A DNA stretch of 63,646 nt, filler included, from Octopus bimaculoides (GCF_001194135.2; 9 parts of 9 records of this genome joined end to end with filler, not necessarily neighbours in it); one strand, 5' to 3'. Positions 1,421 through 12,426 are shown, numbered from the whole stretch's first letter. Numbers and translations are program-made. The notes: generated by a model from the sequence alone, not told the origin.

Positions 1421-1489
1421 GCTAAACCGTATCCATGGTTACCTGGTGGAGGCATGGCTATTGAAGTCACAATGGCTGGTTCTGATAAG
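1421..1489 (+). CDS. GRAMD4: Internal coding exon of a GRAMD4-like gene (GRAM domain): AKPYPWLPGGGMAIEVTMAGSDK
   Basis: Acceptor ttttatatcttccctgacag and donor AAG|gtaagt, 69 nt, phase 0/0. Peptide matches my recollection of human GRAMD4 KYKVLSVLPGSGMGIAVSTPSTQK and joins in frame to both downstream terminal exons. Confidence 0.87.
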
Positions 1490-1494
1490 GTAAG

Positions 1495-1607
1495 TATTGT
1501 TTCACAAAAGGGATACAAACATACCTATGTACATGTATTGTTTCACAAAAGGGATACAAACATACCTATGTACATACATACCTATGTACATACATACCTA
1601 TGTACAT
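1495..1607. repeat. Short tandem duplication (about 42-bp unit x2, then CATACCTATGTACATA-like units)
   Basis: TATTGTTTCACAAAAGGGATACAAACATACCTATGTACAT seen twice in tandem. Confidence 0.8.
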
Positions 1608-2689
1608 ACGTGTGTGTGTGTAAGTCAGTCGGTCATTGTTCAGTTTCATTTCAAGATTTCTTGCCAATAGAGAAAGTGCCACTTTCTAACCTGGATCCAA
1701 GGTTCCTTCATTAGAATTTCAACATCAACAACAGGGTATGTTTGTATGTATGTATGAATGTATATGTGCAGATTTGTATGTTTGTTTTATGCATGTACTT
1801 GCATATCTAGACATACTCATATATACTTAAATGATAAACATCTAGAAGTTTTAGATTTTTTTTTTATATATGTATGTATGTACGTATGTACAGTAATGCT
1901 CTAATAAGCACTGGTATACTACATTGCTCTTTTTGTCTTGAAGCATATATTTTTTATATATTTTCAGTGAGACGACATTATGTTATTAAAATAATTGTAT
2001 GAAAGTATGATTCATACACTTGTATACACTCGTTCACATACACAAATTATTCACATAAGTTTTTACCGTATCATGAATTGAAAACATCCTGCTTCTCCAA
2101 ATTGCTGAAAATTCAACTGAAGTTGAACCAAAAGATACTCAGAAGAATTAGTAGTTAACATAGTTTGGTTTGATAGACTCAAACGATGGCATAACCTTCA
2201 CATTAGTTTGGGTGTATTGTATGGAAATTCTACCCACTCCTTTCCCTACATGCAGAGTATAGGCATTTCCTTGGTGGTAGTGCATCACTTGTATACTGAT
2301 GAGTTAAATCTTATTCCAGAATCTGTAGAAATTTCAAAAGTGAAGCCTAGAATTAGAAAATATCAAGCTAAACTTAGCAAAGACTGAAGTTTTTGTCAGT
2401 GGGGACAAAAACTAGATTCCACTACGACCATGGAAGTCCTGTACTCAGGACTGGGTAGAATTTCCATACAGCATACTCAATGTAGACTATGTGTGCACAA
2501 AAGATGTTGCCATATCATTAGCAGGTTAGTTGGAAAAGTAGATTTTTTTTCTTTTATGTAATTGATGCAGAAAAACAGTCAATAGGCAGAGAAGCTGAAA
2601 GTATAGGAACCAGAGTCAAAAATAGAATAGGAAAAGATCACGGAGTTATCACTTTGCTAATGACAATGGTTTCTCTTTCAGTGGGGGAA

Positions 2690-3010
2690 AGTAGATTGTA
2701 TGATACTTGTATATGAAGTGTAATACACTGTGGGCCTTCAGTTTGGAGAGTTGACAAAGATAGAAAGAACTGAAGTGAATATATTCTACTGACAATGTAA
2801 TGTGTGCAGGAATAACAAAGCATGAATGAACGGAGAAAAAAAAAACTGGATATATGAGCAATTATATGTTGTGTGTAAGAGAGAAGATATGTGATGCATG
2901 TGGAAGATGTGCTGGTTGATAAATAAGTGCCAAGTGCTCAAAACAGATGAATATTAAGAAGACAGGGTATAAAGTGGTGAAGATTGATCTCAAGAAGTTG
3001 AACATAATAA
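2690..3010 (+). mobile_element. Highly decayed RTE LINE RT C-terminal fragment
   Basis: Patchy similarity, e.g. VVKIDLKKLN versus VVRQDLRTLG; many stops. Confidence 0.4.
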
Positions 3011-3194
3011 AGGGGAAAAAGGGGGGGGAGCTGGAGAATAGCCACCCATTAGTGCAAAATGAACTTCTTTACGATACTTTCATGTCTTCACACCAGGATA
3101 AATGCCTTCAGAATCATTACTGCATTGGTTGGGGGGGAGGGAATGCCTTCAAAATCACTGAAAAAAATACCTAGTGGCATTTCTTCCAACTTTA

Positions 3195-3350
3195 CGTTCA
3201 AAGTTCAAATGCTATCATGGTCGACTTTACTTTTCATCCTTTTGAGGTTAATAAAATAAGTATTAGTTGAATACTGGGGTTGATATAATCCAATTATTTT
3301 CTCTCCCCAAATTACTGGCCTTGTGCCAAGACTTGAAATTAATATTAAAG
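3195..3350 (+). mobile_element. SINE-like family 2 copy (TTTCATCCTT..GG..ATAAAATAAGTA core)
   Basis: Shares core and 3' end (GGCCTTGTGCC..TTGAAA) with copies at 12660, 14155, 22450 and 62660. Confidence 0.6.
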
Positions 3351-9300: not shown

Positions 9301-9399
9301 TGCTTATATATATACACACACACACAAACATATATGTATATATATATACATAAATATATATATATATATATATATACATACACATAGATACACACATAA

Positions 9400-10440
9400 A
9401 ATCAAGAAATTTTCCATGCTGCAGCCCCCTATTACAATGAGGCTATGGTGTCTAGTGGTGTAAAGGACCCCGTTTCCTATATACCAGGCCCTAGCACACA
9501 CGGATGGAGGCGCCATTTGGTTTGCTCCATCCTCCATCAACGACGAGGCTTGTGTGGGAAGAATATTTCTCATGTTAGTAGACAAACGCTTCATGCAGAC
9601 ACACAGGTAAGGGGGTTTGTTCAACAGACAAAACCTAAGGGTCTCCTTTAGTTACACACCCAACACGAAAAGAATATTGGCAAACAGCTACAAAAGCCAA
9701 GCAGAAGCTTGGTGCTCATGGAGGGAGTACAATGACTGCCCAGTGGGGTGAGGTGGCAATGCAAGGCTGAGTGAGTTGTCTGAGTCTGTGGTGGTACCGA
9801 GACCAAGCAACCAGAGTAATAGCTGCAGCAGCTCATGCCACCACATTGACAGCAGCAGCGCAACTAGAAGCACCAGCACCGATGGCAACAACTGCAGCAC
9901 CAACAGAGATGGTGACCATTCCAACACCAAAAGCAAAAAATACCATTTCCACAACCAGTATTAGCAGAGATGGCAGCCACAACACCAGGACTACAGCCAG
10001 GGATGACTTCTACAATGACATCATCTACAGCAATATCACCAGACCCCTAATAACACCACCAATGACAGCTCCAGTAACAGCAACAACTCCAAGCCTGGCG
10101 CCAACAGAAGACACACCTAAAGATGTGAACACAACCAGCACTCAAGTCTGGAGATATATATCAGGTCGGCAAGGACTGCCCTTAAGCAGGACCTATACAA
10201 CCCCAGGTCCTCTTTCAGGATTGTGGAAAGACGGGATGTGACATCCCATCCCTGGCCAGTCATGTATGATGCCTTAAGGATGAGAGAACCACATACGAAA
10301 TTAAATGGAGGATCACAGAGCAGCCGGAGTCTTACATAAACAGGAGGGGACAATGCAAGCTTTGCATAGCAGGACAAATAAGGATCTTTATAAACTCCCT
10401 GCACCCAGTTTTCTCTTAAATTTTAGACATGGATCTATAG
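9400..10440 (+). mobile_element. Penelope-like element: post-RT region, Thr/Ala/Pro-rich linker and GIY-YIG endonuclease, decayed
   Basis: QEIFHAAAPYYNEAMVSSG, AIWFAPS..VGRIFLMLVDKRF..LFNRQNLRVSFSYTPN, EIYIRSARTALKQDLYNPRSSFR and LASHV*CLKDERTTYEIKWRITEQPESYINRRGQCKLC across frameshifts. Confidence 0.8.
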
Positions 10441-11422
10441 CTCCTGCCCCCATTTCATGCAAGCATGAGATTCCCTATTCATTGATTAGAGCCAGAAGAC
10501 CTCCTCACAGACTGGAAACAGCCTAAGGGCAAAGATACCCAGTTTGTCAACTGAACCGGTCTAAGGGAAATAACTAATCTTGTCTAAGCCTCAAAAGGTA
10601 TTTTATCCTTTCTTTACAAGTTAACTGGCCATACAAGATTTCTACCTCCACTTTGAAGAGGCGTTATATTTCCTCTGCCATTAGAGTTTGACAAATCATA
10701 CATAAAGCTTTATGAATGCAAAACCATTCTCACTCTATAACCAGACATATATTTAACTGTATGTAAATATATATATATATATATANNNNNNNNNNNNNNN
10801 NNNNNNNNNNNNNNNNNNNNNNNNNNNNNNNNNNNNNNNNNNNNNNNNNNNNNNNNNNNNNNNNNNNNNNNNNNNNNNNNNNNNNNNNNNNNNNNNNNNN
10901 NNNNNNNNNNNNNNNNNNNNNNNNNNNNNNNNNNNNNNNNNNNNNNNNNNNNNNNNNNNNNNNNNNNNNNNNNNNNNNNNNNNNNNNNNNNNNNNNNNNN
11001 NNNNNNNNNNNNNNNNNNNNNNNNNNNNNNNNNNNNNNNNNNNNNNNNNNNNNNNNNNNNNNNNNNNNNNNNNNNNNNNNNNNNNNNNNNNNNNNNNNNN
11101 NNNNNNNNNNNNNNNNNNNNNNNNNNNNNNNNNNNNNNNNNNNNNNNNNNNNNNNNNNNNNNNNNNNNNNNNNNNNNNNNNNNNNNNNNNNNNNNNNNNN
11201 NNNNNNNNNNNNNNNNNNNNNNNNNNNNNNNNNNNNNNNNNNNNNNNNNNNNNNNNNNNNNNNNNNNNNNNNNNNNNNNNNNNNNNNNNNNNNNNNNNNN
11301 NNNNNNNNNNNNNNNNNNNNNNNNNNNNNNNNNNNNNNNNNNNNNNNNNNNNNNNNNNNNNNNNNNNNNNNNNNNNNNNNNNNNNNNNNNNNNNNNNNNN
11401 NNNNNNNNNNNNNNNNNNNNNN

Positions 11423-11481
<59 letters not shown>

Positions 11482-12174
11482 TGACATTTATTATAAAAAG
11501 TTAACCACTTGATTTATGAAATTTCTGATATTCTTATAATGCCTTTTAAGTATGGTTTTCTTCTCTTTTCTCGTGTTCACCTTGTTCTGTTATCTAATGA
11601 CTTTCATTTATTCTAATAGCATTTTACTGCAATTAACTCTCTCTCTGTTATAGCATGCTATAACAATTAACACAAGATGTGGTGCATGTAAAACACAACT
11701 AAAATTTAATTGGATTATTTTGAATTAATGTTGTCACATGTGTAAAGGTTCTAATTCATATTTATTAATTTGTGTCACACACACACACAGAGTTTTTTTT
11801 GTTCTTGTCTGTAGCTATGTGTATTATGATATAAACTTTTGTATAGTCTCAGAAGAATTCTATGTACATGTATATACGTGTGTGTATATGAATGTACATA
11901 TGCTTATTTGCACGCAAATACACTCATAAATATGTCTGTGTGTGTGTGTGCAAAGATGCATNNNNNNNNNNTATGTGTGTGTGTGTGTGTGTGTATTCAT
12001 ACCTACATATACACACACATCATTATTACATCACATCATTTCAAGCTTTTGTATTCATATGAAGGTTTTCTTATGTGAATCTGTTTCTGCATTTAGCATC
12101 ACATTGTTACACCTTTTCATTATTTTCATGAGAATTTCACCCAAATTGAAACACATTTTTTTTTTAAATTTCAG

Positions 12175-12426
12175 CCTTACATTTTCGGTGCCTTATTGAA
12201 TCGAGAAGAATGCTACCAAAGTATACACACAGCAGGTTCTGCAGGCGGCTGGGCCTGTCCGGAACCATCTTCTGGATCCATTTCATCTTCGTCTTCCTCA
12301 CCAGTGTCATCAGCAATATCCCAACCAAAGTCTTCTCCACACAAAAGACATATCCAGCGGAGTCAAACATTAAGATTTGATGAAAATGTTGCTTATGCTA
12401 TTTCAGACAATGATAATCACTGCTGA
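12175..12426 (+). CDS. GRAMD4: GRAMD4-like alternative terminal exon B: PYIFGALLNREECYQSIHTAGSAGGWACPEPSSGSISSSSSSPVSSAISQPKSSPHKRHIQRSQTLRFDENVAYAISDNDNHC*
   Basis: Acceptor ttttttttttaaatttcag, phase 0, in frame with 1421-1489; the N-terminal half completes the GRAM domain; AATAAA signals near 13610-13670. Confidence 0.87.
   Translation, partial: PYIFGALLNREECYQSIHTAGSAGGWACPEPSSGSISSSSSSPVSSAISQPKSSPHKRHIQRSQTLRFDENVAYAISDNDNHC

Follow-up and report, generated by a model that had tools for sequence, protein, structure and literature searches.

A GRAMD4-like gene of a cephalopod has its 3' end in the window, by which we mean the whole stretch of DNA analysed (63,646 nucleotides, filler included), and its last coding exon was duplicated long ago. 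It comprises a 69-nt exon, two exons further downstream termed A (proximal) and B (distal), and the intron in between. A slash marks an exon boundary in the following list.

1421..1489, + strand: 69-nt constitutive coding exon, the penultimate one, with phase-0 boundaries on either side, flanks acag/GCT...AAG/gtaagt.
4055..4206, + strand: exon A, a putative 152-nt cassette (acceptor ttgcag/ACG; profile match; alignment to transcript L002).
4207..4212, + strand: GTAGGA, the putative and weak donor site of exon A (donor score; match to the A-to-B junction of relatives).
4213..12174, + strand: rest of the A-B intron with SINE copies, microsatellites and retroelement-like fragments; its acceptor tttcag/ ends at 12174.
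12175..12426, + strand: exon B, the true last coding exon (acceptor tttcag/CCT; CDS 12175-12423; stop codon TGA 12424-12426), running on into the 3'UTR.
12367..12384, + strand: conserved tail motif TLRFDE (hydrophobic-R-hydrophobic-[S/T/D]-[D/E]), 19 residues ahead of the C-terminus.

The constitutive donor and the acceptors of exons A and B were all read directly from the window as phase 0. The 69-nt exon translates to AKPYPWLPGGGMAIEVTMAGSDK, includes a beta-strand of the GRAM domain and is 82.6% identical in nucleotides to its counterpart in L001/L002, two decapodiform transcripts; its donor AAG/GTAAGT at 1489/1490 is strong (12.5 bits). The coding part of exon A (4055-4162) specifies 36 amino acids, TYVFGPMIYRDELFESILFAGKKGTLPWADECNLPN, and is closed by the stop codon TGA at 4163-4165. 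Its product consists of the last GRAM strand, the C-terminal helix and an 8-residue tail past the conserved W, and is 80% identical to the squid-like protein P0002. The untranslated end of the exon is 41 nt long (4166-4206), the final three bases being ATG (4204-4206). Exon B encodes 83 amino acids (PYIFGALLNREECYQSIHTAGSAGGWACPEP...DNDNHC), which are 69% identical to protein P0001 of Acanthosepion. Its first part, about 12175-12255, specifies the last GRAM strand and the C-terminal helix, and a Ser-rich tail of ~55 residues, predicted to be disordered, follows at 12256-12423.

Exons A and B show mutual homology (43% identity over 23 amino acids; E 3e-7 in the pairwise comparison and 1e-4 in a tblastn search of the whole window). 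When about 55 relatives of GRAMD4 were used to build a profile of this exon, it matched A (E 3.9e-14) and B (E 5.4e-13) in the six-frame translation of the window and nowhere else. Direct reading, alignment and profile therefore confirm the arrangement put forward in the sequence-only reading, namely one phase-0 donor exon and two homologous phase-0 exons with their own stops. No second copy of the 69-nt exon was detected in the readable sequence of the window, the flanks of A and B had no nucleotide similarity to each other, and a scan of the window with Rfam and for tRNAs gave no matches.

The A-B intron is occupied by inverted SINE copies and repeat families. All five runs of N (8181-8190, 8388-8487, 8899-9026, 10786-11422 and 11962-11971) are situated in this intron; they amount to 885 N, their lengths being estimates only. 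The gaps are flanked by microsatellite or SINE sequence and touch no exon or reading frame, and the one closest to exon B ends 203 bases ahead of it. No GRAMD4-like coding piece was found in any frame of the readable intron sequence, and nothing passed the threshold when the retroelement-like ORFs were searched with Pfam.

The GRAMD4 family and the GRAM fold

GRAMD4 is a poorly understood membrane-anchored protein which has been linked to apoptosis and signalling and whose last coding exon completes a C-terminal GRAM (PH-like) domain. A transmembrane or hairpin region is located upstream of this domain (PMC9692390, PMC8597946).

An exhaustive search with a profile of the joined exons of the window retrieved 84 proteins (best E 5.8e-27). 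The matches sit at the C-terminal end of GRAM proteins except for about five repetitive proteins matched in several stretches, which were set aside as spurious. The named matches are GRAMD4 or GRAMD4-like proteins of Tachypleus, Lineus, Physella, Trichonephila, Ostrea, Nematostella, Anneissia and Lytechinus. By sequence comparison the gene thus belongs to the GRAMD4 family, as had been proposed. In the squid-like orthologue P0002 the Pfam domain GRAM (PF02893) was matched at residues 510-622 of 641, reaching into exon A (45 bits, cutoff 23.6); the short joined peptides of the window alone stayed below the Pfam GRAM threshold. P0002 additionally matched a PRT_C-type membrane region (34.3 bits, cutoff 28.1), and the corresponding part of the gene would lie upstream of the window. 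A word-indexed protein search gave no match for the donor exon joined to A, only a cuttlefish exon-B fragment for the donor exon joined to B, and seven proteins for a profile of 59 sequences; this index also missed P0002 and is nearly blind, so that missing matches mean little.

The two protein forms of a related cephalopod were modelled with AF2. Strand 109-113 of the AF2 model is the product of the 69-nt exon. In the A-isoform (pLDDT 89.3) exon A supplies strand 119-122 and helix 128-141; in the B-isoform strand 120-123 and helix 128-141 are predicted at pLDDT 93-96 and the tail at 54-59. The best Foldseek matches were the GRAM/PH-like domain of Lam6 (E 1.2e-6), MTMR2 and PH domains. The earlier view of old exon duplicates that each finish the fold is supported: in the models A and B alike contribute the final strand and the C-terminal helix with which the PH-like GRAM domain ends.

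The motif TLRFDE in the tail of exon B also occurs in the squid-like and cuttlefish tails, 20 residues from the C-terminus. Oyster tails contain IVRLTE/VVRLTE at 21 residues, further variants are TFRMSD, MLRMSD and SVRLSD, and Capitella has SFRMST at about 27 residues. In most of the sequences compared the motif is found at about equal distance from the C-terminus.

Splicing of exon A

Logan transcripts were available from a relative which, judged only by its similarity to Acanthosepion, is presumably decapodiform. Both isoforms are expressed in this relative. The protein P0002 (641 aa) contains the donor exon and an A-type end, and P0086 (688 aa) shares body and donor exon with it but has a B-type end; the 605-aa bodies are identical except for one substitution and one 1-residue indel. 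The A and B transcripts are uninterrupted cDNA-like contigs, 99.4-99.7% identical over about 2 kb and with the same donor exon. Two isoforms with different helix surfaces and tails, as postulated in the sequence-only reading, hence exist in a related cephalopod.

In the transcripts L002-L005, four assemblies from four sequencing runs, the donor exon is joined to a 144-nt exon A with a stop codon, and this exon to exon B. In the relative's exon A the stop codon is followed by about 30 more bases and then by the splice donor. Exon B is coding in transcript L001 and 3'UTR in L002-L005. The proximal exon is consequently not terminal in the relative, and the suggestion that alternative last exons and polyadenylation select the isoform is not supported by these four assemblies. 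The relative's transcripts containing A also contain B and so do not carry exactly one exon of the pair; the exons, which had been called mutually exclusive, are so in the protein but not in the RNA. The homologous pair is present in one gene in the window, and alternative mature transcripts were seen in the decapodiform relative.

The alignment of the window with the 144-nt exon A of L002 stops exactly at the ATG (...TTTATG), and GTAGGA follows. Of the donor candidates past the stop codon of exon A this one scores highest, with 6.4 bits compared to 12.5 bits for the constitutive donor, and its position (4206/4207) agrees with the A-to-B junction in L002-L005. We infer that the species of the window splices like the decapodiform relative, and exon A is probably an internal cassette, skipped or included, rather than a last exon equipped with a separate poly(A) site.

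According to this model splicing of the pre-mRNA would in every case start from the donor at 1489. With exon A (4055-4206) included, translation would end at the TGA at 4163-4165 and yield a "tail-less" GRAMD4 with a more hydrophobic and basic closing helix (..ELFESILFAGKK..); exon A would be spliced via its weak donor to exon B, which then would serve as 3'UTR only. The mRNA would be expected to escape junction-dependent decay because the stop codon is 41 nt ahead of the A-to-B junction, less than the limit of roughly 50 nt which spares an mRNA. If exon A is skipped, exon B would provide another version of strand and helix (..ECYQSIHTAGSA..) and add the disordered Ser-rich tail with the ancestral motif. 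Regulated inclusion of one weak cassette would in this way swap the surface of the GRAM closing helix and toggle a regulatory tail, and the A and B isoforms may differ in function.

Other lineages and alternative explanations

The 69-nt upstream exon has identical boundaries in Lineus, Physella, Tachypleus and Capitella; its counterpart in Ostrea comprises 63 nt. In the nemertean Lineus the donor exon (31762-31830) is followed by a proximal short-tail exon with a stop codon and ATG/GTATGA and by a distal long-tail exon. RefSeq lists a long-tail form X1 (XP_064633261.1) and a short-tail form X2 (XP_064633262.1) of the GRAMD4-like protein of Lineus longissimus. In the snail Physella a proximal exon with a stop codon and ATG/GTATTT precedes the distal exon. 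Both loci are free of gaps, and a single donor exon serves both copies. No such two-copy layout turned up in oyster, Capitella or horseshoe crab. Each of the three genomic loci with two copies has the Rbfox core motif (U)GCAUG in the 300 nt that follow the cassette; with a chance probability of about 0.02 this was considered too weak to build on.

The vertebrate GRAMD4 sequences recovered show a single version, PLVFGAMVHRDEAFETIF, in agreement with the sequence-only reading. Because of this we concluded that the duplication is, on the sequences compared, limited to some invertebrate lineages. An identity matrix of the 29-residue core did not date the duplication: within-species pairs are 41-52% identical and some cross-phylum pairs up to 72%, and proximal and distal orthology across phyla is not separable. 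The core of octopus A resembles the distal exon of Physella and the oyster exon in sequence; octopus B resembles the same two exons by tail length and the oyster exon also by the VRLTE motif. Either one ancient duplication with losses or repeated duplications could account for this distribution.

Three alternatives to the internal cassette were considered. First, A and B could both be terminal, with separate poly(A) sites, splicing to B competing with cleavage after A. The stop codons in both exons, the weak donor after A and the hexamers past exon A (ATTAAA at 4319 and 4379, AATAAA at 4604) would agree with this, and C-terminal substitutions derived from tandem duplication often go along with alternative poly(A) sites (PMC8373072). 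The hexamers beyond both exons, pointed out before, are expected by chance and uninformative, since AATAAA/ATTAAA occurs about once per 650 bases on the + strand (23 occurrences; GC content 36.6%). Moreover, A is spliced to B in four independent assemblies of the relative, the position of the donor is conserved in the window, and a stop codon followed by a GT donor within 15-41 nt recurs in Lineus, Physella and L010. We therefore regard alternative last exons as unlikely; in the species of the window some cleavage and polyadenylation after exon A may occur, given the weak donor and the two ATTAAA hexamers.

Second, one of the exons could be a decaying relic, leaving a single functional isoform, as one copy suffices for oyster, Capitella and horseshoe crab. 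However, both frames are open, both exons occur in full-length transcripts of the relative, and both are predicted to close the fold with a pLDDT >90. Between the window and the squid-like sequence, that is octopus-like versus decapodiform, pN is 0.15 for exon A and 0.21 for exon B, whereas pS is saturated (0.88 for each). Both copies are thus conserved as coding sequence, and these values show purifying selection on both. A relic is highly improbable.

Third, it is barely conceivable that exon B is part of another, incomplete tandem copy of the gene, whose own upstream exon or exons would be in the gaps, chiefly 10786-11422: a 69-nt exon could fit into the 885 N of estimated length, but microsatellites flank the gaps, and one donor exon serves both copies in Lineus and Physella. 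The relative's A and B transcripts, which share the donor exon and are 99.4-99.7% identical, compared to only about 43% between exons A and B themselves, contradict the possibility, raised in the sequence-only reading, that the 637-N gap conceals a second upstream exon.

In all four two-copy lineages an ATG abuts the splice donor of the cassette (window TTTATG/GTAGGA, squid-like TTAATG/, Lineus TCTATG/GTATGA, Physella GCTATG/GTATTT), and splicing places it in frame with the entire distal exon. The cuttlefish protein P0001, an 85-aa model, starts with M followed by exon B; this would fit an ATG-to-B splice, because the M cannot be genomic beside an AG acceptor. A database look-up for an octopus product of M and exon B returned no record. 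The mRNA including A could be functionally bicistronic, giving the tail-less GRAMD4 and, by reinitiation or leaky access 12-38 nt past the main stop, a free peptide of 65-85 residues; we consider this quite improbable. If true, the free peptide would comprise the closing helix in its alternative version, followed by the conserved regulatory tail.

Implications and comparison with known systems

With exon A as an internal cassette, a long-conserved switch would change only the last strand and the closing helix and add or remove a motif-bearing tail. It would point to helix surface and tail as the parts which evolution treats as regulatory, and the A and B forms would offer two natural GRAMD4 variants for comparing lipid binding and localisation. 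Annotation should treat exon A as a cassette that contains a stop codon and exon B as the shared 3' exon; the 85-aa cuttlefish "protein" and the single-isoform gene model of Physella would accordingly be incomplete.

The exon pair had been thought undescribed. No description was found in the literature searched, but RefSeq holds both forms of Lineus longissimus and the class of event is known (PMC9741552, PMC8373072). The GRAMD4 pair is another case of this class, the C-terminal substitutions derived from tandem exon duplication defined by Martinez-Gomez, Tress and co-workers, and not a new mechanism: the exons are adjacent, homologous, ancient and conserved, and they are used alternatively in the decapodiform relative. 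C-terminal events are enriched among such substitutions (77 of 236 human events; PMC9741552), and the available part of the supplementary text of that paper does not mention GRAMD4.

The Lineus forms X1 and X2 belong to the same family and share the 69-nt exon, the proximal short and distal long tail, and the stop codon followed by ATG/GT. They come from another phylum (Nemertea), and judged by about 29 alignable residues the duplication may or may not be the same event as in cephalopods. Strictly mutually exclusive exons, such as exon 5a/5b of the SCN alpha genes or the Dscam clusters, likewise originate from tandem duplication and contribute one segment per protein; in GRAMD4, in contrast, exclusivity would be brought about by the stop codon rather than by a splicing incompatibility or by competition between RNA structures.

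In KRAS the 4A cassette carries a stop codon; its inclusion turns the downstream exon into 3'UTR, and in transcripts without the cassette the downstream exon encodes the C-terminus. KRAS is among the genes with homologous 3' coding exons (PMC8373072). The GRAMD4 pair resembles KRAS 4A/4B in its tandem homologous exons, its alternative C-termini and the upstream cassette with its own stop. KRAS, a member of another protein family, swaps a lipidated membrane-targeting tail, whereas GRAMD4, in a case from invertebrates known here from sequence and predicted structure, would swap a PH-like strand and helix together with a disordered tail.

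The exons and their gene

Direct reading of the window bore out exactly the three exons described in the sequence-only reading, and every junction of the upstream exon, exon A (the proximal copy) and exon B (the distal copy) is in phase 0:

1421–1489, plus strand: upstream exon, acag/GCT ... AAG/gtaagt, product AKPYPWLPGGGMAIEVTMAGSDK
From 4055 (after ttgcag/), plus strand: coding part of exon A, product TYVFGPMIYRDELFESILFAGKKGTLPWADECNLPN, TGA stop at 4163–4165
From 12175 (after tttcag/), plus strand: exon B, 83 residues, PYIFGALLNREECYQSIHTAGSAGGWACPEP to DNDNHC, TGA stop at 12424–12426

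Pairwise comparison gave 43% identity between A and B over 23 residues, and the similarity was recovered with either exon as query against the whole window (E ~1e-4). Searching the six-frame translation with an exon profile from about 55 relatives picked out only A (E 3.9e-14) and B (E 5.4e-13). The upstream exon occurs once, no second copy being found in the readable sequence, and the remaining portion of the GRAMD4-like gene lies upstream of the window.

A word-indexed protein search, which is nearly blind for these exons, returned an 85-aa product of the cuttlefish Acanthosepion pharaonis consisting of 'M' plus exon B (69% identity). An exhaustive profile search was used as well and matched 84 proteins, nearly all at their C-terminal end. 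The named matches (horseshoe crab, spider, snail, oyster, nemertean, sea anemone, crinoid and sea urchin) are all GRAMD4 or GRAMD4-like, and the top match, the cephalopod protein P0002 (641 aa), contains Pfam GRAM at 510–622 and a membrane-region match upstream. These names and the GRAM domain of P0002 confirm the GRAMD4 identity proposed earlier, and judged by such matches the window gene is a GRAMD4 orthologue. The vertebrate-type version PLVFGAMVHRDEAFETIF was read in the recovered sequences just as the sequence-only reading had given it.

Splicing of exon A

P0002 shares a 605-aa body and the upstream exon with P0086 (688 aa, same cluster); P0002 ends in an A-type exon and P0086 in a B-type exon. 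Since their source contigs are short and the frames uninterrupted, these contigs are transcript assemblies, and the identity of 99.4–99.7% between A- and B-type contigs over about 2 kb argues that both proteins come from one gene. By the similarity to cuttlefish exon B, the source is probably a decapodiform.

In the earlier interpretation each copy was an alternative last exon with a poly(A) site of its own. This was not borne out: four sequencing runs yielded A-type contigs, four in total, and every one leads from the upstream exon through a 144-nt exon A into exon B, which makes exon A a cassette exon. In these contigs it carries its own stop and 33 further bases, the last three being ATG. 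With exon A included, exon B serves as 3'UTR. The AATAAA argument carries no weight, since such hexamers occur every ~650 bases in this sequence of 36.6% GC. Isoform choice is probably a matter of cassette inclusion or skipping with a common last exon, not of separate poly(A)-bearing last exons. The earlier interpretation holds as to the identity of the gene, the duplication, the pair of protein endings and their structural role, but not as to the selection mechanism.

In the window the alignment to the squid-like cassette runs to ...CTTTATG (4200–4206), directly followed by GTAGGA, which is the best donor candidate 3' of the exon A stop (6.4 bits versus 12.5 for the constitutive donor). Regulated cassettes usually have a weak donor. 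From the alignment and the position of this donor we set exon A at 4055–4206, and the donor would be used likewise in the window's own species. The first M of the cuttlefish model is not encodable beside the AG acceptor and would fit a splice from the ATG to exon B.

The cassette ends with the bases ATG not only in the window but also in the squid-like transcripts, the nemertean Lineus longissimus and the snail Physella acuta:

4204–4206 in the window: ATG next to a GT donor
2394–2396 in L002 (squid-like A-type transcript): ATG
33654–33656 in L006 (Lineus locus): ATG next to a GT donor
22357–22359 in L008 (Physella locus): ATG next to a GT donor

About 4% of generic donors would have ATG at these positions, as estimated from standard splice-site frequencies. 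The spliced cassette ATG is in frame with the entire distal exon, and an 'M + exon B' peptide could be translated from the A-including mRNA. We regard such a peptide as unlikely because the start context of the ATG is poor in three of the four cases, ribosomes seldom reinitiate after an ORF of 600 codons, and L010, a further animal sequence, has GTG in its place.

Between the A- and B-type transcripts (L002 and L001) one Arg codon differs, giving KRRRRKVQ in P0002 and KRRRKVQ in P0086, and one Ser/Leu change is also present. These differences could reflect sample polymorphism or a 3-nt alternative splice-site choice.

The Rbfox core motif (U)GCAUG lies within 300 nt 3' of the cassette in all three genomic two-copy loci (window 4244–4248; L006 33683; L008 22350 and 22473; chance ~0.02), which may be a weak hint of tissue-specific regulation.

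All five N runs (assembly gaps) are situated in the A–B intron and have TA/CA/TG microsatellites or a SINE copy on their flanks, and none breaks an exon or reading frame. No coding exon is expected in this intron because the relatives join the upstream exon to B and A to B directly. A SINE-like repeat of ~200–235 nt is present in five copies, 84–97% identical and in both orientations (733–935, 7567–7802, 7822–8051, 8591–8849 and 15645–15879); inverted pairs bracket a microsatellite block at 8052–8590 in the A–B intron. A 96-nt segment is repeated in tandem at 7134–7229 and 7253–7348 (spacing 119 nt, 97% identical) amid SINE fragments. Straight after the constitutive donor, at 1496–1610, a tgtttcacaaaagggatacaaacatacctatgtacat unit occurs in duplicate at the start of the intron, and acatacctatgtacat repeats come next. 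Two ORF fragments on the minus strand, 9053–9397 and 15080–15450, presumably resemble the C-terminal end of a non-LTR retrotransposon ORF2 ('...RLRWYGHV...'-type tail); Pfam gave no match above threshold for either.

Structure and history of the two endings

The squid-like isoforms were modelled with AlphaFold2 over their last 154 (A) and 202 (B) residues, each with a 31-sequence alignment, and both models show the same PH-like sandwich. In the A model (mean pLDDT 89.3) the upstream exon forms strand 109–113, and exon A forms the last strand (119–122) and the closing helix (128–141), leaving a short tail. In the B model (mean pLDDT 80.7) the last strand is at 120–123 and the closing helix again at 128–141, a block with pLDDT 93–96, followed by a 55-residue tail without secondary structure (pLDDT 54–59). 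According to these models the claim that either exon supplies the last strand and the C-terminal helix was correct. Foldseek neighbours of the A model are the Lam6 GRAM/PH-like domain, MTMR2 and PH domains. By sequence reading, A and B have Y, F, G, R, E, S-I, A-G, G and W-A in common, whereas at the variable helix positions the residues of A (L-F, K-K) are more hydrophobic and basic than those of B (H-T, S-A). A functional meaning of these helix differences would be conjecture.

Synonymous sites have reached saturation (pS 0.85–0.88) in the comparison of the window with the squid-like transcripts, and non-synonymous differences amount to 0.15 in A, 0.21 in B and 0.04 in the upstream exon. On sequence grounds, both A and B have remained coding ever since the two lineages diverged.

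Lineus has a 69-nt upstream exon as in the window, a proximal short-tail exon and, 5 kb further, a distal long-tail exon; RefSeq lists the proximal ending as isoform X2 and the distal one as X1. Its proximal exon continues after the stop with 12 bases and ATG/GTATGA, that of Physella with 18 bases and ATG/GTATTT. The Physella proximal exon is unannotated, the annotated end being the distal exon. It reads PYIFGAILNRDEAYEAIGAAGRKAGLSWSSASRCPSPTE up to the stop (L008 22219–22359, GCA_028476545.3) and is missing from XP_059143166.1, the one protein recovered for the gene, which ends in the distal exon; the annotation probably lacks a second isoform. A single copy was found in horseshoe crab, oyster, Capitella and animal L009 (10 kb downstream examined), and also in L010, where the stop is followed by 17 bases and GTG/GTAAGT. 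Wherever a donor exists, it lies 15–41 bases downstream of the stop. Junction-dependent mRNA decay has a limit of ~50 bases from stop to junction, and each of these stops would fall inside it.

When cephalopods, oysters, Capitella and several further animals are compared, one motif recurs in the long tails at a near-constant distance from the C-terminus: cephalopods have TLRFDE, oysters VRLTE, and others FRMSD, VRLSD or FRMST. Its pattern is hydrophobic-R-hydrophobic-S/T/D-D/E, with Ser-rich sequence before it (TLRFDE at 12367–12384 in the window), ~18–21 residues from the C-terminus in most long-tail GRAMD4 exons and ~27 in Capitella. It may have been conserved for a regulatory role or as a phosphorylation motif. 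Because this motif is shared, the ancestral ending appears to be that of exon B, with exon A derived from it by shortening. The 29 alignable residues fit a single duplication with later losses as well as repeated duplications.

Comparison with known systems

In the literature searched, no paper connects GRAMD4 with duplicated exons or with alternative terminal exons, and GRAMD4 was not found in the searched supplementary text of the human tandem-duplicated exon substitution catalogue. The GRAMD4 pair represents an isoform switch that is both clean and ancient, in a protein of which little is understood. KRAS exon 4A is a stop-containing cassette upstream of 4B, and the GRAMD4 arrangement is alike in that a stop-bearing proximal cassette precedes a homologous distal exon. 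In Lineus, the equivalent GRAMD4-like pair is already annotated in RefSeq. Homologous 3' coding exons are described for KRAS (PMC8373072), and C-terminal substitutions make up 77 of the 236 human tandem-duplicated exon events (PMC9741552). C-terminal substitution by tandem duplication is a class already well described, and the GRAMD4 case belongs to this familiar type.
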